DNA from: Zygnema circumcarinatum SAG 698-1b
Taxonomy: Eukaryota; Plantae; Zygnematophyceae
NCBI GenBank assembly: GCA_037447605.1
Contig: CM074807.1
Location: forward strand, 2,862,327 to 2,926,326
Direction of reading: 5' to 3'
Length of the DNA stretch: 64,000 bases
Part shown: positions 32,218 through 58,536 of the stretch, in pieces
Layout: every line of letters starts with the position of its first letter
Numbering within the stretch: position 1 is the first letter of the stretch
Translations under genes and position numbers: made by a program
The notes under the pieces: generated by a model
Told to the model about the DNA's origin: nothing
What the model saw: the letters and a program-made list of their open reading frames with translations, nothing else
Databases searched by the model: none

Positions 32218-35200
32218 TCACAACAGAGTCATCCCCAAATTCTTCCACAGCCATTTCTTGTCAGCTGAAGGGGGCATGAACTGCAGAGCGAGCAGCTCCT
32301 TGGCTGCCACCCCATGCTCTGGAAAACGCATTATGAGACCCACGAGGTGGGCACTAGCCTCCACGTGGCCCATGTCTCGGGGTTGTGTCCAGACCATGGC
32401 TGCCAGTTGCAGCTTCCGCTGCTTAGAACTCCGCTCTATCCTCCACTGTTCAAAAAGTTTCTCTCTCTCTTCCAACGTGAATCTCGCCCGCAATCTCCTC
32501 GCAATGAGATCTCGCTCACGCTGCAGAGCTTTCTCCCTGCACGCAAATTTATCCGACGAGTTAAAAAGGAGCAGCTCCTCTTCTGGGAACTGCCTGCACT
32601 CACTCCACTACTCCCATATTGTGGAATATGAAAATCGACCCAACACGAGGACCTCTCACCTTCGTGCCATGGACTGCTCGCCATCGTCCATGCGGCTCTG
32701 CTCACACATCCACACCATCCTCCGCTGCTCCACTTCGAGGTATATCGAGTCACTGGGTTCTCCGGTGATGAGAAGATAGAACTGCGTGCGGTGCACAAGG
32801 GAAACATGGCTGCGCTGCCATAGCTCTGTTATAGAGAGCATTTCACGTTCAAAACGAACAGGCCACAGGCGGAGGGAGCTTGTGGAGTGCAGACCTCCAC
32901 TCCCGCCATCACTTTGCTCATCGTCATCGTAAGGTATATGGCGTTGGCCTTCCATTTCCAGCACCTGAACCACCATTAAATCACGGCAGGTAAGGAGCTA
33001 CAGATTAGTAAAGCTCTACAATACCTGAGCTGCTAAAGATACTCTACAGTTACGTACACACACACAGCAGGAATGGCCGATCCATGCAACAAGGCCTGGC
33101 AGAGCCTCAGACAGTGAAAGCTCACCTTCTCAATGAGAACGTGCTTGTGATGGTCAAGCTTAGCAATACGTTCCTTCAGCTGCTGCACATAACTTCTTAG
33201 GCTCCGAATATTCTCCTGCGCCGCCTGCTTAAAGAGAAGCTGCAGACGTCTGTCTCCCTTAGACCCTGCAAGCCACTCTTTTGCTTCCATGCCTCCAATT
33301 TCCATCTCTGCTGGCCCACCTGTCGGTGCCCTCTCGTCCAAAACCGATACGTTTTCCTCATTGGTTTCCCTAAGAACAGCAGAGCTGTTCACAGGTGACT
33401 TGTGCGAACCGATGTTGGGTAGAATGGCGTTCCCAGTGGACACCTTAATGTCTACAAGTGCTTTACGCCCTTCCCCAGCATCCTCCGCCTCGCAGAATTT
33501 GTCCAGAGATTGCTGCACTCTTTCCAACTCTTCTTCTAGCCGCGCAAAAGTCTCCTTCTCCTTATCATCCCTCAGTCGTGAGAGCTCCCGCAGACTCACC
33601 ACAATGTTGTCTTTGCTTCCCTCTGTGCTCACACTCTTGTCCCCACTAACTTCATCTTGCCCAAGAAGCTCCGCACCTCCCTCAGGGCTGCGAGCCAACT
33701 GAATGAGCCGAACTTCAGCCTGTAATCTCCCTCTCCCCAACTCCAAACACATCAGCCGTTGCTTTGTTACACACGACATATTCTGAAACTTGTCCACTCC
33801 GAAAGATGGACATCATGGAGGATGGCACCTTCCTTAGCAACTATGAATTGCATATCTGCGTTTGAATACCAGGGTGGTAAAGGCAGGTGATGTATCACAC
33901 CTGTAGCTGCGCCAGTGTTTCTGCATTGCCTTGATTCATGCCCTGCTGAGCCATTCGTAGGCAATGCATTTCCTTCATGAGAGCCTCCATCGCCCGTCCA
34001 GCATCTTCCACAATCTCATCATTCATTGTGGCAAGCTTTCGCACCTCACTCTGAATGCGCGTTTGGAGTCTCCTAATCCTGCCCTCATTCCCTCTCATAA
34101 CAAAAGTCAGCCAGCTGCAAAAACATCATCCTTTACAGCATCAAGAAACAACAACTTCTTATCGCATACTTGCAAGTCAAGCCCCCTTTCCGTCCCCGAA
34201 ACCAAGCTATTACCTGTGCCTTTCCCGAGCACCCTCCCCTTGGAGCCAACTCTCTGAGGGTCCAATTCGTGCACTGCTCGCTTCAAGCAGCCCTCCCATG
34301 CTGCCTGAAGAGAGGGGACTCTCATGCGATGCCGAAGGGGACCTCTTCTTTGCATTGCGGAAGCTCGCTCCTTGACGCATGAATCTCTGCAGGCTTGGCT
34401 GCCGAATGTCCTTTGTTGCATCGCGTCCCTGAGCATCCCCACAGCGAGCAACCTCCTCTCAACATTGCATATATAGACTCCGTAAGCAATTCCAGGATCC
34501 TTGACTTAGAGAATTTGGCTAGACATGCAGCATTCAATATTGTGAAGTTTCAGGAACAGATCTTCACGAAATAGGCGGCCATTCGAGGGAGACAACAGCC
34601 TAAATTGGCTTGCAATAAATGAATGGGTCTTTGCAGGTCCACTCACAGCAAGCTTCAATTCCGCTTTGCTCAGAGCATTAGTGACTTCCTGCAATCGGAC
34701 TTGGGCCACATTCCGCTGCCGTGACAGCTCCGCATTCTCAGCCTCCAGCTGCCAACGAGAGGAGACACAAGCAAAAATAAGCATATCAGCAGGACAACTC
34801 TCTGCAGGCATAAACAGGTCATGGTCTTCTTAAGGAAATTACATTTTCGGACGCCATAAGGACTGAGAGTCCAACGACATTGCACACACAAATACACTTT
34901 CATGCAGCATCTCTCAACTGCACGCTTGCAAACGTCGTCTTTTACGAATGTCCAAGGTCCATTCCTTCCTCCACCGTTTTCAGTCTTTCCTTCCTTCCAA
35001 TGCCAACATAAAAGAGATATTTTCACTTAAAACTGCACCTTTTGCACTAGTAGCCGTTGTGCCTGAAAATCTGCCATTGAAGGAGCTGTCAGCAGTTCTG
35101 CTTGCAAGCGGGCTACTTCCCTCTCCAGCTGTTTCACCAGCACCTTGTCCGACATCATCTGCATGGAGCCGTTTCCCGTTTGACATCATTCCCCAGGTTA

Positions 35201-38200
35201 TCTCCAATATGGATCATACTTCAGAAGCAGAGAACTATCGCTCGTAACGTGTGACAGATAAAAGCACAAAGCACCATTCCAGACAACCTACCTAAAAGAT
35301 AACATGAAGTGCAGACACATTAAGGACAGGCTGCACTATAAAAGCCATAGCAAACCCGGCTATGGCCCCATATAAGCAGGTTAGAAAACTTTGAACTTGA
35401 GAGAACGAACCACCTACTCCTGTCACGGTTCATGCAATGTATACCTCCCACTCCTGCAATTAGTAATTTGTACTCACCAAATTAACATGTGCTGTGTTGG
35501 TGACCTCCTTGGCCCGTGTGGCAAACGAGAGTGTGTTTCGAGTCTGGTCTACATGCGTTCGAGCAGGGCTAAGGGTACAGATAATGGCGGTTCGGCCGTT
35601 TCCTCCCAAAGAGTGGGAGAGGATTCGGGTCAACTTGGAATCTCGGTATGGAATATGGCCAGAGCGAGTTTTGTTTCCGCCACTGCATGCAGACACCGAC
35701 ACAACTCCACTGCATTTAAAACCCCTCTCCTTAGCGAGCACGGCCTCTTCTCCTACTCAGAAGAGATAAGGACTTCACCTGAGTTTGCGGATGACTGTGC
35801 TCAGCGTCAACAAGCTGCGGTTAATGTAAGCTCCCTCCTTTAGACGGGTTCCCTCTGCTTGCGTTTGCGAAGCTCGCTCTGAGCCAGCAAGGTCCACAAA
35901 ATTCTGCTCCCACCCTCACCCTAGTCAAGTGTCATAATATTGTTGCACCAATAGTGCAAGTCGACACGTTTTCGCATACTCAGGCCCACTATTTGTGGCA
36001 AGGAAATCAACAGGGAGTGCCGTAGCTTAACAAGAGCAGCAACAACGATGCGAGTACAAAGTGAAAGAGCATCTTTTGAGTTATAACTTTTTCAAACGGG
36101 CAACAACAAATGCTTCCAACGGAGAGGAGGTTGAAAGCTTGATTAGCAGCGAGCACAACTCACGAAACAGTCTCCATGCTTGCCAGATTCTGACAAATGC
36201 CAAAAGCAAAGGAAGGAGGAAACCATACCAGAGTAGCTGTGAGGACCTGCCCACTGAAGCCCTCTAGAGACGACTTCAGACCCGTTGATGGCAAGGGGCA
36301 GCTTTCTACTGTCTGCAGGGCCACATTCATTTCCTTGATCAAAACTAGAATTCCATCATGCATGCATTGCTGTAGGACACTTGTAACCACTCTCCGACCG
36401 CACGCAGAATCTCGCTTGCAGTAGGAGAATGATAGTCAGCTCCCAATGCAACCTGGTTTCCTCGACTTCACTGCATATAGCATTTGTGGGCTTCAGGCCA
36501 GCTTTCAACTCTGGTATAGCTAGCACCACTACCTGTTAAGTCTGTAAAAGTATACGTGATATCCTAGGCTGATGCGTCACAACTAGCAAGAACTGACTTG
36601 TTGTCACATCTCCATTTTCTCCAAGCCATTTTGTTTGGTTTTGTCACAGTGGCTCACTCTCTAAGCTATCCCGCTCCTTTGTGCACATCTGACCATTCGC
36701 ATTCATCAGCACTAGGTCCCTCGAGATTTATAACTATTATCATCCGTAGTCCAAATGTATGACACGGGATACTGCTTCACGTTTCGTACTCCGTGCACTA
36801 ACTGATAGCATTTGTAACACTCACATGCAACATGTAAGGAACAGCTCCCATAATCTACAGAACAGTCGAGACATGCTTGGAAGCAAAAGAACTCTAGACT
36901 TAATAAATTGGCCTCCCCCTCATATCCAGTGCATGCAGAGCAATGACATGATATAGAAAGGATTGGAGAGAGTGCAGAAAGGTGAAGGAACACACCAGTC
37001 GCACAATTTGATGCGACCGCGAGCTGAACTCGTTCAGAGTGGTCTCCCCCACCTGCCGCTGGGCTGCCAAGCCCACCATCATTCAATTCAGTGGATCAGC
37101 CACACTTGTCAATGGCATAGTTGTACGGTTGAAGGGAAGCCATGCCCAGGAACTGCAATTGTGCGCATCAGTTTTTGGTTCATTTGAAGAGGAGTGGAGC
37201 TGAAAGTACACTCGCAATCGGCCAGGATTTGGCGCAGATGCATGGACGAACGAACCACCTCCTCAGTGAGTTTTTCAACGACAGTCCCCTTCTGCCAATG
37301 CTCCCAAATGTGATACACCAGTGAGATAAAGCTTCCTGAAAGTTGCTGCAAAGCCATCTTCTTTATTCAGCAAAGCCGGATTTTGGAAAAAGCTGCCTCG
37401 GTTCGTGAAGGAGTGTTCGTAATGAGGGAGTATCGGGGACTGCAACGGGAGTCATTGAGGAATAAAAAAGGGTGTCCCCGCAATTCAGGCAACCAGTGGG
37501 ATGCTGACAGTGTGCAGGAAAAAGGCAACTAGTAATGCTTACATAGGGATCGTCCAGGAGGCGAAGGGCGCCGCTCTCCATATTCAGTAAATCCCGCACA
37601 ACTTCATTGTAAATCTCCAAAGCTGAGACGCGAATCATGTACTCGCGTTGAGGAGTCTGCCATTACCGCAAAAACATATGAGACATGCAAGGCTGCACGA
37701 AGCCACAAGTCTAGCTTCTCTAGACCAAGCTATGTGAGATTATTCAGTCTCTCGGAAAAAAAGGGATATGATCTTAGAACCAGGACTCCAACGGCATGAA
37801 GAACAAAAGGAACGAAGTACGTCGTCGGCAAGCAGTTACGCCCTTCGAGACACTGCAGGGGACTGTTACACTACTCTTGGATATGACGATTCATGCCAGT
37901 GACTACATGGAAAAAATAAAGGTGTTTTAAATTCTGAGAAGATACACGAAAAACTTCAAAGGAGGTACGTGTTTGCATAAACAACAGCAAACAGATGGAA
38001 AACATTGCCCTGTGGGGAAGGCCCCCTACTCAAAAGAGAGTATGAGCTTAGTCCAATTAAAGATAAGGATTGCAGGTAAGCTCACTATTGCTGTGGGAAA
38101 GAGGAATCACTAAAGGTTTTGAGGGAAGTGTTTGGTCTATCCAAGCTGTGAACAAAAGAAAGTGAGCCAATCCAAACCCATGAAAATAGCCGGAATAACT

Positions 38201-39653
38201 GCTCTTAAACAAGAAAGGTCACTACTTAAACCATGAAAAAGAACAATGCTGAAGTATGCTGGAGGAGGAAATCTGTATATAGAAAAAGGGCTTGATCCTT
38301 CACAAACGCATCAACTCAACCTTCAATTGACTGTAAGAGAGTGCATTCTTGCTCACATTTTGAATGTGCTCGAAGATGTCGAGGGTGGCAAGCTCTGTTA
38401 CTGCCTTCATTGTGTGTGTCTTACCACTGCTCGTCATTCCATATGCAAAGATGGATGCTGCAGCAGTCATACATGAATCATGAGCTCCTGCACTCATACG
38501 TCCTTCTGTGCATGCAGATAGCTTTACATGCTTTAAGCATATCACCAATATTGGAGTCGGAGCAAGCTGTGCATACCGTTCACTCCGGCAAGTGCAGACA
38601 AAACAACATCCTGGGCGCCTTCTGCGTAAACCTGCTGGGACTCGCATGTAGGACCAAAAACTCGATCTGCTCAACAATCAGCGCTCCCAGTGTCATACAC
38701 TCATAGCCTGGGGCCCTGCCAGAGATAATTGAATTGGGTGGTCTTTTTTTGCAGATTTTTGAAGGTGTGTTGTGCTATACCAACAATTTGCAACCCCTTT
38801 CAGACTAAATTGAAGTTTAAAAATTACACATGAAAGGGACTGGCTGGCTGTGAAGCCCACATGGAAGAATGCCTCCAAGATATCCAGACGCCTACAGTAG
38901 CGGCAAACGAAACCCTAAGTGCAGTTTGAGACTCATTATTTGCCACGATGCAAAAGAGAACCTGGCAATGCCCTAACTGAAAAGGAACAAAGCAACCTAC
39001 GACAGCTATAGTTGCAGGAAAGGATGCAAAAGAGCTGTGAGCATACCAAAATGGTATGCAGCGGGATACGGGCTGCGTTCAGGCAAAGCCTCCATAAAAC
39101 GGAGAGTATGTTTATCTGGACACTGCCACACACCGACGTCACGCAGGGCCAGCTCCTTCTCGCTTAGAGGGCGGACCCTAACTGTGACAAAGATCTTCTC
39201 CTCACCGCCGCTTCCACCCCCTCTCTCGATGTTATCTGCCATGGTCTTTCCAGGCTTCTGCCGGGGGCTAACGCTACGTTTATTTGTAGCAGACATATGC
39301 CCTAAAGCACGCACGGACCGCTGCTGTTTGGGCGTACTATGGGGGGCAGGAGACATCCATTCTGGTGCTTCCCCGTCCAGCGGTCCCTTCATTGCCGCCT
39401 CGCTAATTGCAAAGGCATCGAATCGCCTTGAATTCGACTGCTTGTCGTCGTTTTTAACAGGCGAACGCTCACTGAAGGGACTCACCGCGTAGGGCTCATT
39501 GTTTGCGTGAGGAGTGATCAACGGAGAAGTGGCAGTCGGAGTCATGTACGGAGTATCTACAGGCTCCGCAGGCTCATCCGACGGCCATGGCCTGTAACGA
39601 GAAGAGGTAGGAGAGTAGAAAGTGGGTGCAGGAGTTGGTCCGCGTGCAGCCAT
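32218..39653 (-). CDS. NACK1: Kinesin-7 (NACK1/HINKEL/TETRASPORE-like) with C-terminal DUF3490-type domain
   Basis: Motor motifs across exons: [90 protein letters not shown]. The C-terminus reads [36 protein letters not shown] and [12 protein letters not shown]. Confidence 0.92.
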
Positions 39654-40966
39654 GGCTTGCGCTTCCAGGACTCCGCGAGTGCAAGGCGCCTGCGCTGGCG
39701 GCAGCCCTGCTGCATCGCTCCTTCCTTCCGTCCTTACTTCCCTCCCTCCTTCCTGCTGCCTCCTTGCCTTTCGCCTGCTGGGCAGGCGGGCGGGCGGCCC
39801 GCGCAGAGCCAGAGCCAGACCCAGAGCCAGCCCCCGCTCCCTCCACCCACCGTGCCATGCCATGCCATGCCATGCCATCCCATGCCACGCCATGCCATTC
39901 CATGCCATGCCATGCCATGCCATGCCATCCCATGCCATGCCATGCCATCCCATGCCATGCCATGCCATGCCATCCCATGCCACGCCATGCCATGCCATCC
40001 CATGCCACGCCATGCCATGCCATCCCATGCCACGCCATGCCATGCCATCCCATGCCACTCCATGCCATGCCATCCCATGCCACACCATCCCAAGGCGTGC
40101 CGTGGCGTGTGCGCGCGCTATGCATGTGCCACCTTGACTATGACCATGACCATGTACATTGCGACCTGAGGCCCGGCGGGCCCATGGAGCCATGAGTGAC
40201 GCATGGCATGGCGTGGCATGGGATGGCATGAGATGGCATGGGATGGCATGAGATGGCATGGCATGGCACGGTGGGTGGAGGGAGCGGGGGCTGGCTCTGG
40301 GTCTGGCTCTGGCTCTGCGCGGGCCGCCCGCCCGCCTGCCCAGCAAGCGAAAGGCAAGGAGGCAGCAGGAAGGAGGGAGGGAAGTAAGGACGGAAGGAAG
40401 GAGCGATGCAGCAGGGCTGCCGCCAGCGCAGGCGCCTTGCACTCGCGGAGTCCTGGAAGCGCAAGCCATGGCTGCACGCGGACCAACTCCTGCACCCACT
40501 TTCTACTCTCCTACCTCTTCTCGTTACAGGCCATGGCCGCCGGATGAGCCTGCGGAGCCTGTAGATACTCCGTACATGACTCTGACTGCCACTTCTCCGT
40601 TGACCACTCTTCACGCAAACAATGAGCCCTACGCGGTGAGTCCCTTCAGTGAGGGTTCGCCTGTCAAAAACGACGACAAGCAGTCGAATTCAAGACGATT
40701 TGATGCATTTGCAAATGGCGAGGCGGCAATGAAGGGACCGCTGGACGGGGAAGCACCAGAATGGATGTCTTCTGCCCCCTATAGTACTCCCAAACAGCAG
40801 CGGTCTGCGCTTGCTTTAGGGCATATGTCTGCTACAAATAAACGTAGCATTAGCCCCCGGCAGAGGCCTGGAAAGACCATGGCAGAAAACATCGAGAGCG
40901 GGGGTGGAAGCGGCGGTGAGGAGAAGATCTCTCACACAGTTAGGTCTCGCTCTCTAAACGAGAAGG
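39155..40966. repeat. Long inverted duplication (palindrome): arms 39155-39860 and 40261-40966, (CCATG/CCATC)n satellites and a roughly 110-bp unique spacer in the centre
   Basis: Paired coordinates sum to 80121 throughout, so there are no indels. About 30 substitutions over 706 bp, counted by eye. Confidence 0.97.
39852..40268. repeat. (CCATG/CCATC)n pentamer satellite 39852-40090 and its inverse 40201-40268
   Basis: Directly visible; source of the MAWHG/HAMPC ORFs. Confidence 0.95.
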
Positions 40967-43900
40967 CAAAAAAATCAGAGGGAAATCAGAGGAATTCTAA
41001 GGCTGCAACCGTGAAACGCATTCCAGTTCCTGGAGTGAGGGAATTCCTTGACCAAGACTCTAACTTGTTGAGGTCACGTTTTTTCCGGCCACCGCATAAA
41101 TATATCCATACTTCGGATGGAGAAACGCAGCTGACACTACCAGAATGTACTCGCATAGTGTATGATATGGACACAGATGATGAGGAATGGCTGAAGGAAA
41201 AAGAGCAGGAGAGGCTAGCAGGGGATATAACATTGAGTGCACCAATCTCGGAGGAACTCTTCGAGAATCTGATGGATAGATTGGAGAAGGAGTCGCATAC
41301 TTTGAATGAGCTAGTTATGCGTGACATGGCGTTGAAGTTGCTTGACGGGATTGCCCCGGAGGACGCAATCGAGTCTGTGCATGGACACTGGTTGCAGAAA
41401 CGAACAAAGAAAGGAATGCCACTTGTTCGCCAATTCCAGGTAAGGTAGACCTCCAAATGGTGCTCTTGGGATGAAGTTTATAATTGTGTTAGCATATCCT
41501 TTTTTGAAGTGGGATCCGTGACAGCAAATTGTGCAACTTCGTGACAGTTTATGAATAGTAGGGCCATTTAGCTGAGGCGATTGTATAGGAACTCGGGGGT
41601 CTAAGTTGCGGAGAGATGTGCCCAGTGCGAGGAAACATCGTCAGAAATTATGGCAGTTCAAGAAGATTAGTGGCATCACTTTCTAACCGGGTGTACAGGG
41701 TTGGACATACTTCCTGGAAAAGTTAGGTCTGGGTAAATTTCTCAGATTCGAGAAAGATTGGTTTGTAATCTACACACTCAGCAGCTTAACATTCCTGGGC
41801 GCTGACGCTGTTCAGACTGGTGGTCGTAAAATTCTTTTTTTTCCAGTAGATGCTTGGATTTTTGCTGTCCCTTCCTCCCTATGTTTAGAAGCTGCATCAG
41901 TGGTTTTGTAGCACTCCTGTGAGTTTGGCGAATGCTGACTTTGTTAGAATGACCCTGGAATTTTTGCAGCCACCACCATGGGAACAGTATCAGAGCCAGC
42001 AGGCAGCATGGCAAGCAGACATCCAGCAGATGATGCAGGCACAGCCAGGAGTAACGCGGCAGCAGTTACAGCAGCAACACAAGAGGCCACCCATCTTTGC
42101 ATTTTGCCTTCGCCCTCGAAGTCACCAGGACAAGCTGCAGCGTCAACGCTCTCACAAAAAGCTTGATAGATCTGCTACCGAACAGTCAGCTATGCCGAAT
42201 TCTCCAGGTGCGAGACGTGGATCAAGGGAGGCTACAGAAGCTGGAGATTTTCATCCGCATGCTACCACTGATTCATCAAAATCTCCTGCATCGCGCCAAG
42301 GAAAGGGGAGCAAGCAAAGTCGTGCGAACGGTGTGTAACGTTTTAGTGTATGCATTCCCTCATGCATGCACCCTTATCCCGCTTGATCTTTTCTTCTGTC
42401 CCTCTCCCATGCTTCCTGCCTATGTTGTTGAACAGAAATTGTTTAAATCTTACATGGGAATTAACATAATTTGAGTTTCTTTCATTCGTTCTGTGTTTTG
42501 TTCCTTCAGTGCATTTCTGTCTGAATGCTTGTGGTGGTGCGATTTGCAGTCTTTTAGTTTTTTAGGGAGAGCATCCGTGGTTTAGGATTGCTGTTTTAGT
42601 GGGCGTACATATGAAAGTATAACTTCGAAGAATTTGGAGATAAATGTACTTCTCTTTTTCTTTTGCAGGTTCAAAGAAAAAGAATGGACGTTCCAGGAGA
42701 AAATCACAGAGCGGTCGGCCTCAGAGCACAATTCTGGACCTCGCCGGAGCGTTTAAGGCGGTGGCTCAAAGGCAGCAGCGGTCAAGGCCTTCAGCTGCTT
42801 TCTTGGAGAAGATTTATAATAGCATTGCAGCCATGCCTCCGGACAACAGAGCTGTTCAAGATGCTTCCGGGAGTGCAGTTTTGGCAATTCCAGAGCCTTC
42901 AAAGTTGACAGTTCCACTGCCTGAAAGGGCTGCGAGGCAGGCCTCTGCCAGGAAGGCCCGGAGAGCAGTGATTGGAGAAAGGCGACTTCAGAGGAATGTA
43001 AATGTGTCAACGAGACTGGAAGCAGTGCGACCTATGCACATGCAAGACGCTGCTAAACTACAAGGATCTGGTGCGGTGGTTGACGCTCCAATGTTGATGT
43101 TGACTGAAGAAAGTATGGCAATGGAGCAAACGGTTTCCTTAGCCTTTCCTGTGAAAGCAGAACAAGTCGATGGCAAGAGAAGTGAGCTTCGAAGCCTGTT
43201 TCCTGGTACAGAAAGCGTTTCAGTAGCTCCCGGTGAAGAAGTGGCTTCGGCTGTGCAAGATGGTGCAAATGCCATGGGAATCTCGAGGGGTAATGTTAAG
43301 CCTCGTACCAAGAAGCGCAATTCATGGCTTAAACCAAAGAAGAGGATCAATAAAAGGGAGCAGAGAGTGAGGTTGATGGCTGCAGCTGCAGCCTCACGCA
43401 TGAAGAGAAAGGAGAGGCAGTTGGAGCAGCAACGGGAGTTGCAGCTTCTACAACAGCAGCTCGGGCTGGGTGCGCCTGATTTTGTAGGGGAGCAAGACCA
43501 GGTAGACGACGGAAAACCGGCAGTGTCTTCTCTGAGGGAAGGTGCACATGAGAACCTGCATGTAAAGACGGAAAATGGTGATGTCAGCACAGGCAGCCCA
43601 CCTGTTGTGGCCGTATACCAGCGTAGGAGTGAAAGCAGGAGAACGATGCCTCTGCACGAAGTGGGTTTAATTTCTGCAGAGCTGAAGAATCGACTTAGGG
43701 GTCTTATGGACCGGCAAATATCGGTAGGACGAACTTTAGACCAAAGGCCTGTGCAGACTTCTCCAGGTTCACTTATTGAATTGGACCAATCTGAGGGTGA
43801 TTCCGAGATTAGTCATGAAAATTTGCCTCAAGAACAGCTGGAATTGGGGCAACCTGAAGTGGATGAAGGATTTGCAGCTGCGAAGCGGATGAGGGATCAA

Positions 43901-44299
43901 GCTAATAGTTTGCGAGCAAATGCAATCAAGTTAGGGAAAGCTGCTGAAGTTGCGTTGGAGCGGGCGATTGCTGCGATGTCTGCAGCAGAAACGTTTGAGC
44001 ATGCTGTAAAGTTGGCTTCAGAAGAGAGCAATCACCGGCCTTCAAGTGGAATTGAAAGGCGATCTTTGCGACAAAAACGTAAGGTACGAGATAAGCCAGG
44101 TACAGCGGGGGCTCCCAAGGCTTCTCGGTCTATTTCAAGGCGTGGCCCTCTTGCCATGAAGAAGAGGAGGATGAGAAATAAGCTGTCGAAAGATGGTATG
44201 CAAGTGGATATAGAAATCGCTCTGAATGGGAAGCTTGAAGCTTTGCACTCAAATGGGGGCATTACAGAGTTAAGGAAGGACGGCATGGGAAGCGCTTGA
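40468..44299 (+). CDS. Chimeric gene: kinesin-7-derived N-terminus fused to an Enhancer-of-Polycomb-related (EPCR1/2-like) EPL1 domain and C-terminus
   Basis: Exons are 40468-41439, 41970-42330 and 42669-44299. EPCR-like motifs: NSKAATVKRIPVPGV, YDMDTDDEEWL, EELFENLMDRLEKES, HWLQKRTKKGMPLVRQFQ|PPPWEQYQ, RPPIFAFCLRPR, QRSHKKL. The first about 166 codons copy the kinesin N-terminus. Confidence 0.88.
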
Positions 44300-45535: not shown

Positions 45536-48500
45536 ATGTTGGCGTCAGCTGAACCAATGGTGTTGACGGACACGATGGACAAGGTGGCAGGGGCAGGGGC
45601 TGACCCGACTGCTGTTCCCGCAGTCCCTCCGAACCGTTCAAGCTTGAATGCGGAGGATGCTGTTCTCCCACGCCGGAAAGTTACAGCGTCTAGAAAGGGA
45701 AGGCCCAGGGAAGTCACTGCAGAAGAAGCAGAAGAATTTGGAATATCTGCAGAGCTTGGAGCTCGCGCTATGCGGCAGGTGACGAGGTTAACCAATTATG
45801 CGGACATGGATGCTGGGGTAGAAGGAGGTTCTGTGGACGAGTCACAAGCTAAGGTCAGGAGGAAGAAGCAGAAGCTCATGTCAGACTCTGATAGTATTGA
45901 AGCCCAGGTTGCTTTTACCCTTGGATTCCCTCCGGATTCTCTAATGGAGGAGGAGATAGAAGCAGGACTCGTGTCCACGTTGGGTGGAGTCGAGCAAGCA
46001 AGTTATGTGGCTGTGAGAAACTACATCTTATCAGTCTGGCGAAACAATGTTAACCAGTGGTTGACTATTGATCGAGTGAGTTAACGCCTTGCCCAGAAGT
46101 ATCAGGGTTGGGCACGTTGAAACCTCTTTGGAACTTGAATGTGGTCAGTGTTCGATTTGTCTTCAGACAGTGCCAAGCTTCTCTCAATACGTTTCGGAAG
46201 TTTCCATTTGAGAACGGCTGGGACTTTTGAACGGCAGTTTGACTAGTGTTCAACTTAGGACCTTAGGAAGAATCAGGGGGAGGGAGGGGGCAACTGATGA
46301 ATAAGTTGTTGGGGCAGCAGATTTTCGACTATGGCGCGCGTCAGTCACTTTCCTCACAATAATCAGGAGACTTTGTTGCGGACGTTAGCTGTTTTTACTC
46401 TGCGTCTTTAGGATATTAACTTGTCTTTCAAGCTCGTAATTATTGAACTATGTTCTCTTTAACGTTGGGCTTATCCAGATCATGGAGAGAATTCGTTCAC
46501 AACACAGGGCATTAGCAGAATCTGCTTACAAATTCCTTGTTTCTCGTGGCTACATCAATTTTGGTGTTGCTCCGGCGATTAGAGCTGCAATTCCTCAAGA
46601 CCTGAGCAAAGCAAGCGTTATTATTGTGGGAGCGGGCCTATCAGGTCTGGCAGCAGCTCGCCAGCTCTTGGCTTTCGGGCATAAGTAAGTACTAAACCCA
46701 GGCCTCTTCCTCCTTTGCTGTTTCTCTGTGGTTCCGTTAGCGTGTTTCCAACTAAGCCAAGGCAGTGTGAAGCCGAGGCTTCCTGTGAAACGTACTGACT
46801 ATCATAGTTCGACAGATAAGGGTGTACGACATTTAATGAGCATATGGATAAACCAGTAGAATGTTGTAATATTTTTTCCTGTACTTGGCCAAAAGCTGCC
46901 AAGAGAAGGGGGTGGCAGCTTCTCTGGCCACTTGCGTGGGTCTGAGGGGTTTAAACCGCACCTAGGATTTTGCGTCCTGCAGTTTAAGGGCTGCTTATTG
47001 TGAAAGTATGAGGTTGCTGTTGATCCTGGCAGGGTTATTCAGGGGTATTGGGTAGATCACGACTGTTAACGTGTCGAGCATTGCCGTTGTTGATGTGATT
47101 GGGACAATGGAATCCGAGCAGGCCGATATTTTAGACAGGATAGTATGTGTCTGTTTGCCAAAAGTAGGGAAATTTGGGGCGATTGCATATAGCTGGATGC
47201 TTGTAAGTTCTCAAAAAGTTTTGATAGGGCATCCTGTATTTCAGACAGATCCTTGTGCAAAGAGTTGAATGATCGTCGAACTGAGGCTTGGGACGCGCAT
47301 TGGTTGTTGCTTTGTATGTCTTTCTGCCTGGTTGCACAGATCATCTAAGGCGAATCCTAGCTGATCGGCTTCTTGGAACATCATAAATGCAGAGTAGTTG
47401 TGGTGGAGGGACGCCAAAGAGCTGGTGGACGTGTGTACACGAAGACGATGGAGCGAGACAACTTCTGCGCGGCTGCTGATCTGGGGGGAAGTGTCATCAC
47501 AGGCATAAATGGTAATCCCCTTGGTGTGATAGCTCGCCAGCTTGGGTTTCGCCTTCACAAGATTCGAGATGTCTGTCCATTGTTCACCCACGAGGGTCAT
47601 CCTGTAAGCGCAGAGTTGGACAAGAAAGTAGAGGAAGAGTTCAACTGGGTTTTGGAGCAGGCATCCAATTGGCGCAAGGAAATGGACCACGTGGCGGATG
47701 AAGTATCCTTAGGTACAACATTAGAGACTTTACGCGAAAGAGCCGGCATTGCATCCTCTCCAGAAGAAAGGCAGCTTCTGGACTGGCACATGGCAAACCT
47801 AGAATACGCAAATGCTGCTTTGCTATCTGATCTGTCTCTGGCCAACTGGGACCAGGATGACCCCTATGAAATGAGTGGGGATCATTGCTTTTTGGAGGGG
47901 GGCAATGTCAGGCTGGTCAATGCCCTGGCGGAGGGGCTTCCGATCTCCTACGGACTCACAGTTAAGGAGATAAAGTATGGACCGCAGGGAGTGAGAGTCA
48001 CAGCACTCAAGCCAGGTCCTGCTGGAGAGGCGGGGCAAGAGCAGGTTTTTGAGGGGGACATGGTGCTTTGTACAGTTTCTCTGGGAGTTCTGAAGCGTAA
48101 AGATAGCATTCGGTTTGATCCTCCTTTGCCCCAAAGGAAACAGGAAGCCATCGATCGGTTGGGTTTCGGTCTTTTGAACAAGGTATTCGCATTCTCCTGG
48201 CAGTTCTTCTATGTCCGGTTTATTACAGCCTCAAGTCTCAAGCCAATCATAACCCATACATGAATGATACCTTTTCCTTTGCCCCAGTAAGTCTCATAAG
48301 TCTAGATCCGTAGTGGAGGTTTTAGCAATCTCGTATATTGTTCTTAACGCCATCTAGCATTGGGCATTCTGATTGACGTCGCATGGTAGTTTTCCTTTAA
48401 CCTAATATTCCCGTATAGCTAATTGACCTTGCAGATCGCTAGCGAAAGAGGTAGCCAAGAGTGCAGTCCAGTGTGCTTGTTCTATCATTCATTAATCAAT

Positions 48501-55875: not shown

Positions 55876-56377
55876 GTACGGAGAAATGTGCGAAAACTAT
55901 GAACGGTACGAACAAAAGTAAGGAAAGTGCAAGCAGTACGGACTGTTCGCATCCACATGCGAGTTCCGTCTCAGCAGTCGCCGTCCCGGCCATCGCCGTG
56001 ACGTGACGTTGTACGCTGACGTAGTGGGGCACGGTCGAGTGGCACAGGTTTCCGAGTTTTCCGTGCCCCGGCCATGCCCCCCCCCCCCCCCCGGGGCATG
56101 ACCCCCCCGCTCAGGGCATGCCCGGGCTGGCCCCCGTGCCTCCAACCTTGTCGCGGCTTTTCAACAGCTAGCCGTACGAACCCGCGGACCAGATCGACTA
56201 GTTAGCGGGCGCCACGTGGAGTAGTAGACGTGATCGAGGGCNNNNNNNNNNNNNNNNNNNNNNNNNNNNNNNNNNNNNNNNNNNNNNNNNNNNNNNNNNN
56301 NNNNNNNNNNNNNNNNNNNNNNNNNNNNNNNNNNNNNNNNNCTTGTGGCGAATATGAAAGGCCACATCGAGGCTGCT

Positions 56378-57689: not shown

Positions 57690-58536
57690 TAGGGATGGCC
57701 CGCGTTATAAATTCCGAATATATTATATAATTTACAACGGGTTTAAAATTAGTAATATATTACAAACTAAAACACTTTATTACATATATTATACCCACTC
57801 GTTTTGAACAATTAACGACCGTACAACCGTACTCGTACGTCCGTACGGTCGTACCATACCATTATTAGGTCGTTTTTGCGTTGGCGTTGCGAAATGCGTC
57901 CGTCTGGTTCACTGTCTGCTCGTGCTCGGGCCGCATAATACCGTACAGTCGTACGACCGTACATGTTGTAAAGGCGTTGTAAATTAATATATATCAGCCG
58001 TTATCTAGTCGTCACAGTTGTATAATATAATATATAATATATAGTCGTAACTAATCAGAGAAAATGATGTTTGATTGAACTCACGATGGCAAGGCCATCA
58101 AATGTACATGGAGAAAATCGACATAAGGAACCAAAAGAAGCGGTCACAATGGACATAAGGACCAAGAGAAAGCCTTGAAACGGAAATCAACTTCTAGGCG
58201 CAACAACACGGCACTAGAAGCAGCCGCGAAGGTCGCCAATGTGGGGCGCNNNNNNNNNNAAATAGAGGCGATAGGGGCAGGAGCCTCGCGCAACTCCCGA
58301 AAAATCTCCTCACGTGCAACACTGTTGAAGGCGTTCGTCACATCAACCTGCAAAACCACCCAATCCGGATGAAGGTCAAGCGTCGCTCGAATACCATGAA
58401 CGACCGCCTCGCAAACCCCAGGGGTGACGACACCAAACTGATAAGGGGAAAAATGATCCTAAAAAGCCCCCTGCAACTGCAAACACATAGCACGGGCAAC
58501 CACACGATACAAGACCTCCCCCCTAATCCATCCCTA
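57690..58536. mobile_element. Non-autonomous hAT element carrying a LINE RT fragment
   Basis: 9-bp TIR TAGGGATGG/CCATCCCTA (Ac-like TAGGGATG) and a perfect 8-bp TSD TTCAGTAC (57682-57689 and 58537-58544). Clustered CGTAC subterminal motifs at about 57829-57962. Confidence 0.85.
58260..58520 (-). pseudogene. Decayed non-LTR retrotransposon reverse-transcriptase fragment
   Basis: The minus strand reads GEVLYRVVARAMCLQLQGAF*DHFSPYQFGVVTPGVCEAVVHGIRATLDLHPDWVVLQVDVTNAFNSVAREEI. These are RT domain 2-3 motifs with an in-frame stop. Confidence 0.85.

Follow-up and report, generated by a model that had tools for sequence, protein, structure and literature searches.

Within a 64,000-nucleotide (nt) stretch of the genome of the streptophyte alga Zygnema circumcarinatum SAG 698-1b (assembly GCA_037447605.1, contig CM074807.1, positions 2,862,327 to 2,926,326; "the window" hereafter), the 5′ end of a kinesin gene has been copied in inverted orientation and joined in frame to a truncated gene of the EPCR (Enhancer of Polycomb-related) type. 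On balance, this is probably a real chimeric gene locus that arose through fold-back (snap-back) inverted duplication, and it belongs to the known class of chimeric genes formed by partial or inverted duplication. That a new gene was made here we infer from the integrity of its open reading frame (ORF). A young pseudogene and a translation start downstream of the junction are serious alternatives.

The structure itself is a near-palindrome. A repeat search placed its arms at 39155–39920 and 40201–40966: 766 nt each, 95% complementary, and separated by 280 nt. Without the microsatellite at their inner ends, 706 nt on each side (39155–39860 and 40261–40966) align with 30 differences and zero gaps (95.8% identity); agreement of 96% over 706 nt far exceeds what chance would produce, and no further copy of the arm occurs within the window. 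The initial annotation had read these segments as gap-free inverted copies with mirrored ATGs, in which about 166 kinesin codons, up to the first motor strand, continue without intron or stop into an EPL1 domain, and the alignment bears this out on each count. The ATG at 39653 (minus strand) mirrors that at 40468 (plus strand), since 39155 + 40966 − 39653 = 40468. The right arm consists of the mirrored 207-nt 5′ flank of the kinesin gene followed by ATG 40468 and 166 codons, which end in ...EEKISHTVRSRSLNEK, where the parental version differs. The plus-strand frame then crosses 40966 into AKKSEGNQRNSKAATVKRIPVPGV and runs on, with neither stop nor intron, through the EPL1 domain (Pfam PF10513, E = 1.1e-17) to a gtaagg donor at 41440; homology to EPCR proteins picks up again at 40975–40987 (QRN). 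Read along the plus strand, the order is thus parental arm, long (CCATG)n array, about 105 nt of unique sequence, short complementary array, inverted copy, and foreign gene (Table 1).

The differences between the arms are unevenly placed: the inner 279 nt hold one and the outer 427 nt hold 29 (binomial p = 7e-6), and eight are clustered within 40931–40958 of the right arm, beside the junction (Poisson p = 3e-4). All 30 are substitutions, with 0 indels; the homologue search gave no kinesin leader that could serve as an outgroup to polarise them. The steep inner–outer gradient is best explained by gene conversion between the arms near the centre. Folded as single-stranded DNA, the segment 39830–40290 reaches a free energy of −159 kcal/mol (z = −9.5 against shuffled controls). 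The (CCATG)n centre is a plausible fragile or hairpin-forming site.

Table 1. Features of the palindrome and of the two genes that it joins, in window coordinates.
Feature	Position	Strand	Details
Left (parental) arm	39155–39860	-	207-nt 5′ flank and first 166 kinesin codons; repeat search and arm alignment
(CCATG)n microsatellite, long array	39845–40095	.	unit with self-complementary CATG core (4-nt palindrome)
Unique centre, about 105 nt	40096–40200	.	with 39921–40095 makes the 280-nt loop between the arms
Short complementary (CATGG)n array	40201–40271	.	mirrors 39850–39920
Right (derived) arm	40261–40966	+	mirrored 5′ flank, ATG 40468, 166 kinesin-derived codons
Junction, kinesin-derived/EPCR-derived	40966–40967	+	in frame, between codons 166 and 167
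Chimeric gene, exon 1	40468–41439	+	324 codons, 166 kinesin-derived and 158 EPCR; donor CAG|GTAAGG
Chimeric gene, exon 2	41970–42330	+	EPcB-like block ...RPPIFAFCLRPR...; EPCR homology continues
Chimeric gene, exon 3	42669–44299	+	lineage-specific tail of about 543 codons; stop 44297–44299
Parent kinesin gene	33033–39653	-	multi-exon, exon 1 from ATG 39653; Pfam Kinesin PF00225 on five minus-strand exon ORFs

Long-read sequencing is known to produce artefactual palindromes, and a palindromic chimeric read or a misjoin could lead to a structure of this kind. A 100-N run present elsewhere in the assembly fits such an origin, as does the finding that no independent assembly with the junction turned up in public assemblies or metagenome contigs. 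To our knowledge, however, artefactual palindromes are essentially identical between their arms; here 30 sites differ between the arms along a significant gradient, the sequence in the middle is non-palindromic, and the fusion keeps the reading frame at the edge of a domain. No assembly gap lies within 15 kb of the palindrome, the nearest N run being 15 kb off, and we consider an assembly artefact very improbable. The N runs in the window are at 56242–56341 (100 bases) and 58250–58259 (10 bases), in or beside a protein-kinase gene region.

The palindrome could also be a young hairpin-RNA locus (a source of small interfering RNA or a proto-microRNA) targeting the kinesin. Such loci, born from inverted duplication of target genes, are known in plants, and arms of about 700 nt at 96% identity around a strongly folding centre would form long double-stranded RNA if read through. 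The arms face outward, however, and normal transcription of either gene would miss one of them. The substitutions also show no wobble bias (10 G:U against 10 A:C on either strand, plus 10 transversions), and past the junction the outer arm continues as an intact 822-codon ORF. We think this explanation the most far-fetched of those considered.

The kinesin is clearly the donor, because the copy stops inside the conserved first motor strand; it is within this strand that the left arm terminates. The kinesin motor domain is present in the parent gene, with PF00225 matches on five exon ORFs (best E = 1.6e-20), and its exon 1 encodes a Ser/Thr-Pro-rich N-terminal extension of about 150 residues, then the first motor strand. 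Codon usage in the leader is exon-like in the kinesin frame alone, which scores +0.20 bits per codon where the other two give −0.2 and −0.4, and the extension is therefore truly coding in the parent kinesin; the same score is negative in all frames for the introns and the palindrome centre. As to the type of kinesin, one motor exon matches KIF7, kinesin-1 and KIF3C best among PDB entries, and CENP-E is not preferred; these matches do not favour kinesin-7, the class named in the initial annotation.

On the other side of the junction, a three-exon model with GT-AG introns and pyrimidine-rich acceptors keeps a continuous frame for 987 codons. Exon 1 holds the EPL1 core motifs (IPVPGV ... YDMDTDDEEWL ... 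WLQKRTKKGMPLVRQFQ). Its nominal PF10513 match begins at profile position 51 but includes kinesin-derived residues; true homology starts from about position 85. Similarity to other proteins is limited to residues ~165–420 of the model, and a word-indexed protein search with the 551-residue tail detected no relatives of the last ~550 residues. In an AlphaFold (AF2) prediction of exon 1, residues 1–158 are disordered, a moderate-confidence helix (159–181) spans the junction, and the helices of the EPL1 core (residues 230–320) are confidently folded, with a predicted local distance difference test score (pLDDT) above 90.

The first in-frame ATG after the junction, 41167, lies inside YDMDTDDEEW and downstream of the invariant I-P-x-P-G-V, F, R and Y; a protein with the IPVPGV block must therefore start in the kinesin-derived leader. 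There the candidates are ATG 40468 or, at latest, ATG 40879, both in strong context (the latter AAGACCATGG). It is unlikely, in our judgement, that the gene is functional with a protein that is not chimeric, the kinesin copy serving as promoter or 5′ untranslated region (UTR) and the start lying past the junction (e.g., at 41167) or transcription beginning inside the arm. Such a reading would account for a leader without selective constraint, for an upstream ORF (uORF) of 52 codons that overlaps the first ATG, and for the strong context of ATG 40879. Yet even a start at ATG 40879 leaves 29 kinesin-derived residues, no in-frame ATG exists between 40967 and 41167, and a start at 41167 would remove the invariant, still intact IPVPGV...F.R...Y block. 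In addition, the leader holds five ATGs in frame and several more out of frame, an unusual feature in a 5′UTR, and there is no indel among the 30 substitutions.

The family to which the downstream part belongs emerges from its homologues. Searched exhaustively with HMMER, 1.84 billion representative proteins yielded 254 matches. All 254 match query residues ~150–324 only (the best being 41–44% identical), and in these proteins the matching segment sits 500–2,250 residues from the N-terminus. They include proteins of Chara braunii, Spirogloea muscicola, Sphagnum, Physcomitrium, Diphasiastrum, Welwitschia, Acorus, Spirodela, Brachypodium and a Brassicaceae species, and carry source labels such as "Enhancer of polycomb-like protein" and "Tudor domain-containing protein". 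A PTM/DIR17-type Tudor domain lies near the N-terminus in four of eight scanned homologues, mostly just under the Pfam cut-off, and was also matched in upstream ORFs of two homologous loci; all eight scanned proteins align with just the latter half of the EPL1 profile (positions ~85–165). This layout of a long N-terminus, a Tudor domain and half an EPL1 domain is the architecture of Arabidopsis EPCR1 and EPCR2, which associate physically with PWWP, ARID, TRB, HAM1/2 and UBP5 (PMC12713088). The initial annotation had stated that plant EPCR proteins normally carry a long N-terminal region with a Tudor-like domain, and that this region is absent here; the retrieved homologues agree with the first statement, and the second holds as well, since the homologous segment lies 500–2,250 residues in and the lost parts are not in the window.

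What the window gene shares with EPCR members from Chara, Spirogloea, mosses, lycophytes and angiosperms is the C-terminal half of EPL1 (IPxPGV ... YDMDSEDEEWL ... W..KR..KGMPL.R.FQ) and the EPcB-like block, at 34–44% identity. It differs from them in having no N-terminal Tudor domain, long linker or PH-like domain, and in having 166 kinesin-copied codons and an unrelated tail of ~550 residues. The retained core scores 141–145 bits against the family profile (145 in the leave-one-out version), where true members reach 127–210; under the same leave-one-out profile, the full-length proteins of Spirogloea and Chara score 127 and 135 bits. In a tree, the EPL1 core groups with Spirogloea and Chara, with a terminal branch of 0.89 against 0.84 and 0.71; this placement is consistent with a streptophyte-algal origin. 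All 15 columns that are invariant across a 32-row alignment (31 homologues and the window gene) fall in the retained part. An intron directly after ...PL(V/I)RQFQ occurs at the same position in the window (41439/41440) and in the two homologous loci (L001, ~11527; L002, ~8163). In both of these loci the EPL1-half exon extends upstream for hundreds of codons, and the junction is therefore not an old exon boundary.

The initial annotation had called the product a NuA4-type subunit. The relatives do not sustain this: they are EPCR/PEAT-type and are without the EPcA-N nucleosome anchor of true EPL1/EPC proteins. There is a genuine likeness, in that the family profile aligns (E = 7e-7) to human EPC1 residues 115–184 in TIP60/NuA4 structures, and this segment belongs to the acetyltransferase-assembling EPcA region of the Epl1/EPC1/AtEPL1 proteins (PDB 8xvg, 8qr1). 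The difference lies upstream: in NuA4, the basic EPcA-N segment anchors Epl1 to the nucleosome acidic patch (PMC11962513), and this segment (PF10513 positions 1 to ~80) has no counterpart in the window gene. On sequence grounds, then, the window gene is not a NuA4-type EPL1.

The part of the EPCR gene that is missing includes more than the Tudor domain. Directly before the IPIPGV motif, all 31 aligned homologues carry a conserved module of about 110 residues (alignment A3, columns ~80–189) with the consensus C.ANVLV..DRGWRE...TNRYTHAMMWKGGKDW.LEF.DR.QW..FKEMHEECYNRN. AlphaFold models the Spirogloea module (P0004:576-677) at pLDDT 90–96 as seven strands with a capping long helix, and its top Foldseek matches all have the PH superfold (RanBD, EVH1, PH; target template modelling score ~0.55, E ~1e-3). 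The module is thus predicted to be a PH-superfold domain, EVH1/RanBD-like; no Pfam family was reported for it in the eight members scanned, and it may be an undescribed domain. In the window gene, kinesin-derived sequence stands in its place and homology returns exactly at QRN. The breakpoint lies inside the last (capping) helix, of which the last ~9 residues remain, and the PH-like domain is therefore destroyed.

Nor do the lost parts lie elsewhere in the window. A tblastn search of the 64 kb with 13 homologues as queries gave no trace of the Tudor domain, linker or PH-like module. When a profile of the PH-like module was run against the six reading frames of the window, the best E was 6.4, against 3e-42 for the retained-core control. 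A nested-gene model, with a full-length EPCR gene holding the kinesin inside one large intron, was rejected for the window as both searches came back empty. These comparisons show that the EPCR-type gene in the window is truly truncated.

The arrangement of long array, loop, short array and inverted copy fits fold-back priming within the array, and a sequence of events can be proposed. A double-strand break beside the upstream (CCATG)n array of the kinesin would leave a 3′ end, which would fold back on the self-complementary CATG units of the array and copy about 770 nt of its own strand, from part of the array through the 207-nt 5′ flank to the ATG and 166 codons. In-frame joining of this new end into an EPCR-type gene would follow, within the last helix of the PH-like domain. 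The EPCR promoter, Tudor domain, linker and PH-like domain would be lost in this step, or else the EPCR part would be a partial copy. The product would be a protein of 987 residues comprising a disordered, kinesin-derived Ser/Thr-Pro-rich leader, the EPL1 helical core, the EPcB-like block and a long tail. Transcription would proceed from the mirrored kinesin 5′ region and translation from ATG 40468, or at latest from ATG 40879. Later arm-to-arm gene conversion would hold the inner 280 nt identical, and the product may still bind the HAM acetyltransferase module as a PEAT-type scaffold without readers.

Foldback priming at double-strand breaks is known to yield inverted duplications (PMC10622511; reviewed in PMC7999016). 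The window locus resembles those duplications in its adjacent inverted copies, its short loop and the position of its inner boundary in self-pairing sequence; its parent gene is intact, the junction is in frame and the downstream ORF is open, as a fold-back chimera would have it. It differs in scale and outcome: the published examples, from yeast and cancer cells, are chromosome rearrangements on a large scale (PMC10622511, PMC7999016), whereas this would be a fixed germline event of 0.77 kb, whose end was joined inside a gene and created an ORF. A second known source of inverted duplications is staggered breakage at Drosophila inversion breakpoints, where they have a median of 321 bp and reach 1.9 kb (PMC1885836). 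These are similar in size, can likewise duplicate the 5′ part of a gene in inverted orientation and have the potential for new gene structures. In the Drosophila cases, however, the copies flank the entire inverted segment, and here they lie 280–400 nt apart. The initial annotation had left the choice between an inverted duplication and an inversion breakpoint; the inverted duplication of the kinesin 5′ end stands, and the breakpoint origin was rejected on this geometry, as its copies would lie at opposite ends of an inverted segment (PMC1885836). A transposon or Pack-MULE origin was also rejected: target-site duplications are missing, the window holds no further copies, and the left arm belongs to a functional exon of the kinesin.

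Whether the chimera is alive is a separate question from how it was built, and the balance of evidence tips modestly toward a functional gene. The 29 differences in the outer 427 nt correspond to a divergence of ~3.3% or more per lineage, an estimate that gene conversion can only lower and that serves for dating on the assumption that arm divergence reflects time. In simulated neutral evolution, the 2,466 nt past the junction stayed free of stops in 4% of trials at 3.3% divergence and in 0.9% at 5%, with indels and splice sites left uncounted; survival of the frame is thus rare under neutrality, which makes a long-dead remnant unlikely. No decay is visible in the retained EPL1 core, whose bit score and branch length are like those of full-length algal members. 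A further hint comes from the eight changes beside the junction, which turn the orphaned hydrophobic motor strand polar (now ISHTVRSRSLN, a hydropathy shift of −17.9). They arose in the copy, because the parent retains the conserved kinesin motif. Such a polar shift fits selection for solubility of the orphaned strand, which would imply translation.

Several points weigh against a living chimera. The dating assumption just mentioned is one, and the cluster beside the junction could equally reflect mutagenic synthesis at the break. An in-frame junction is expected by chance in one case of three, and the leader alone would stay stop-free with a chance of 0.5–0.8. The arm differences are spread over the codon positions as 9/11/9, with 20 nonsynonymous and 6 synonymous codons; given this even spread, the leader is without sign of purifying selection. 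The 207-nt flank is a hypothetical promoter. No protein matching chimeric exon 1 came from a word-indexed protein search, neither the junction-spanning ORF nor the tail ORF was found by exact look-up in public assemblies, and nothing matched the exact 28-mer over the junction or came out of a protein-guided scan of metagenome contigs: across those searches there was no product, transcript contig, orthologue or independent contig with the junction or tail. The copy is without 3 of the 11 parental Ser/Thr-Pro sites, each through a proline change (P39L, P48L and P102S; 40468–40965 compared with 39156–39653), a loss that fits relaxed constraint on phosphorylation motifs.

Taken at their strongest, these points would make the plus-strand gene a dead or dying EPCR remnant within a real structure, its open frame a coincidence. 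The ratio of nonsynonymous to synonymous divergence (dN/dS) between the arms, at ~1 with an even codon-position spread, fits such a remnant. The database searches, with no expression or orthologue match, accord with it too, and two conserved domains are gone, a loss expected to cripple a PEAT scaffold. It would nevertheless have to keep 987 codons in three exons with intact GT-AG sites, at a probability of no stop of at most 0.04 at the arm divergence and much lower with indels, together with an EPL1 core as conserved and short-branched as in full-length algal members. We give this reading a real but minor chance, and continue to favour the chimeric gene.

If expressed, that chimeric gene would be an unusually readable case of one repair event making a gene: the locus still displays its donor, its direction, the self-pairing microsatellite as priming site, a junction that keeps the frame and the gradient left by later conversion. 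With the EPL1 core parted from the Tudor and PH-like domains, it would further amount to a deletion experiment made by nature on the EPCR/PEAT scaffold, in an alga closely related to land plants. A more specific proposal, which we regard as doubtful, is that the working chimera is a reader-less PEAT-type scaffold co-expressed with a mitotic kinesin through mirror-copy promoters maintained by conversion, its Ser/Thr-Pro tail under the same kinase control; histone-acetyltransferase scaffolding would then be coupled to cell division. Should the locus prove silent, it would be an ordinary young remnant of a gene. As a by-product, the comparison brought to light a conserved PH-like domain that EPCR proteins share from Chara to angiosperms and that lacks a Pfam annotation.

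The G2/M-type promoter of NACK1 has M-specific activator (MSA) elements with the core AACGG. This core is absent between the two ATGs (39654–40467), and its count over the whole window is at chance level (95 against 90 expected). Ahead of the ATG, the copied segment amounts to the 207-nt 5′ flank and ~60 nt of microsatellite, which leaves the NACK1-like promoter of the initial annotation unsupported, though the alga may use elements other than MSA. The idea of a shared bidirectional promoter is likewise unsupported: the proximal region exists in two mirrored versions, one per gene, and the genes have only the 280-nt centre in common. A scan for bacterial-type promoters and terminators, of no relevance to this locus, gave nothing. 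The 52-codon uORF lies at 39557–39715 on the minus strand, begins 62 nt upstream of the kinesin ATG and runs across it in a different frame; its mirror image is at about 40406–40564 on the plus strand, and it would be common to both genes if the 5′UTR includes it.

Neither L001 nor L002 has a kinesin or an LSD1-like neighbour, and these loci are too distant to show the ancestral neighbourhood. In the window, the next gene downstream of the chimera (45536–48263, plus strand) encodes SWIRM and flavin amine-oxidase domains, as in an LSD1-like histone demethylase, which places two chromatin-regulator genes in tandem.

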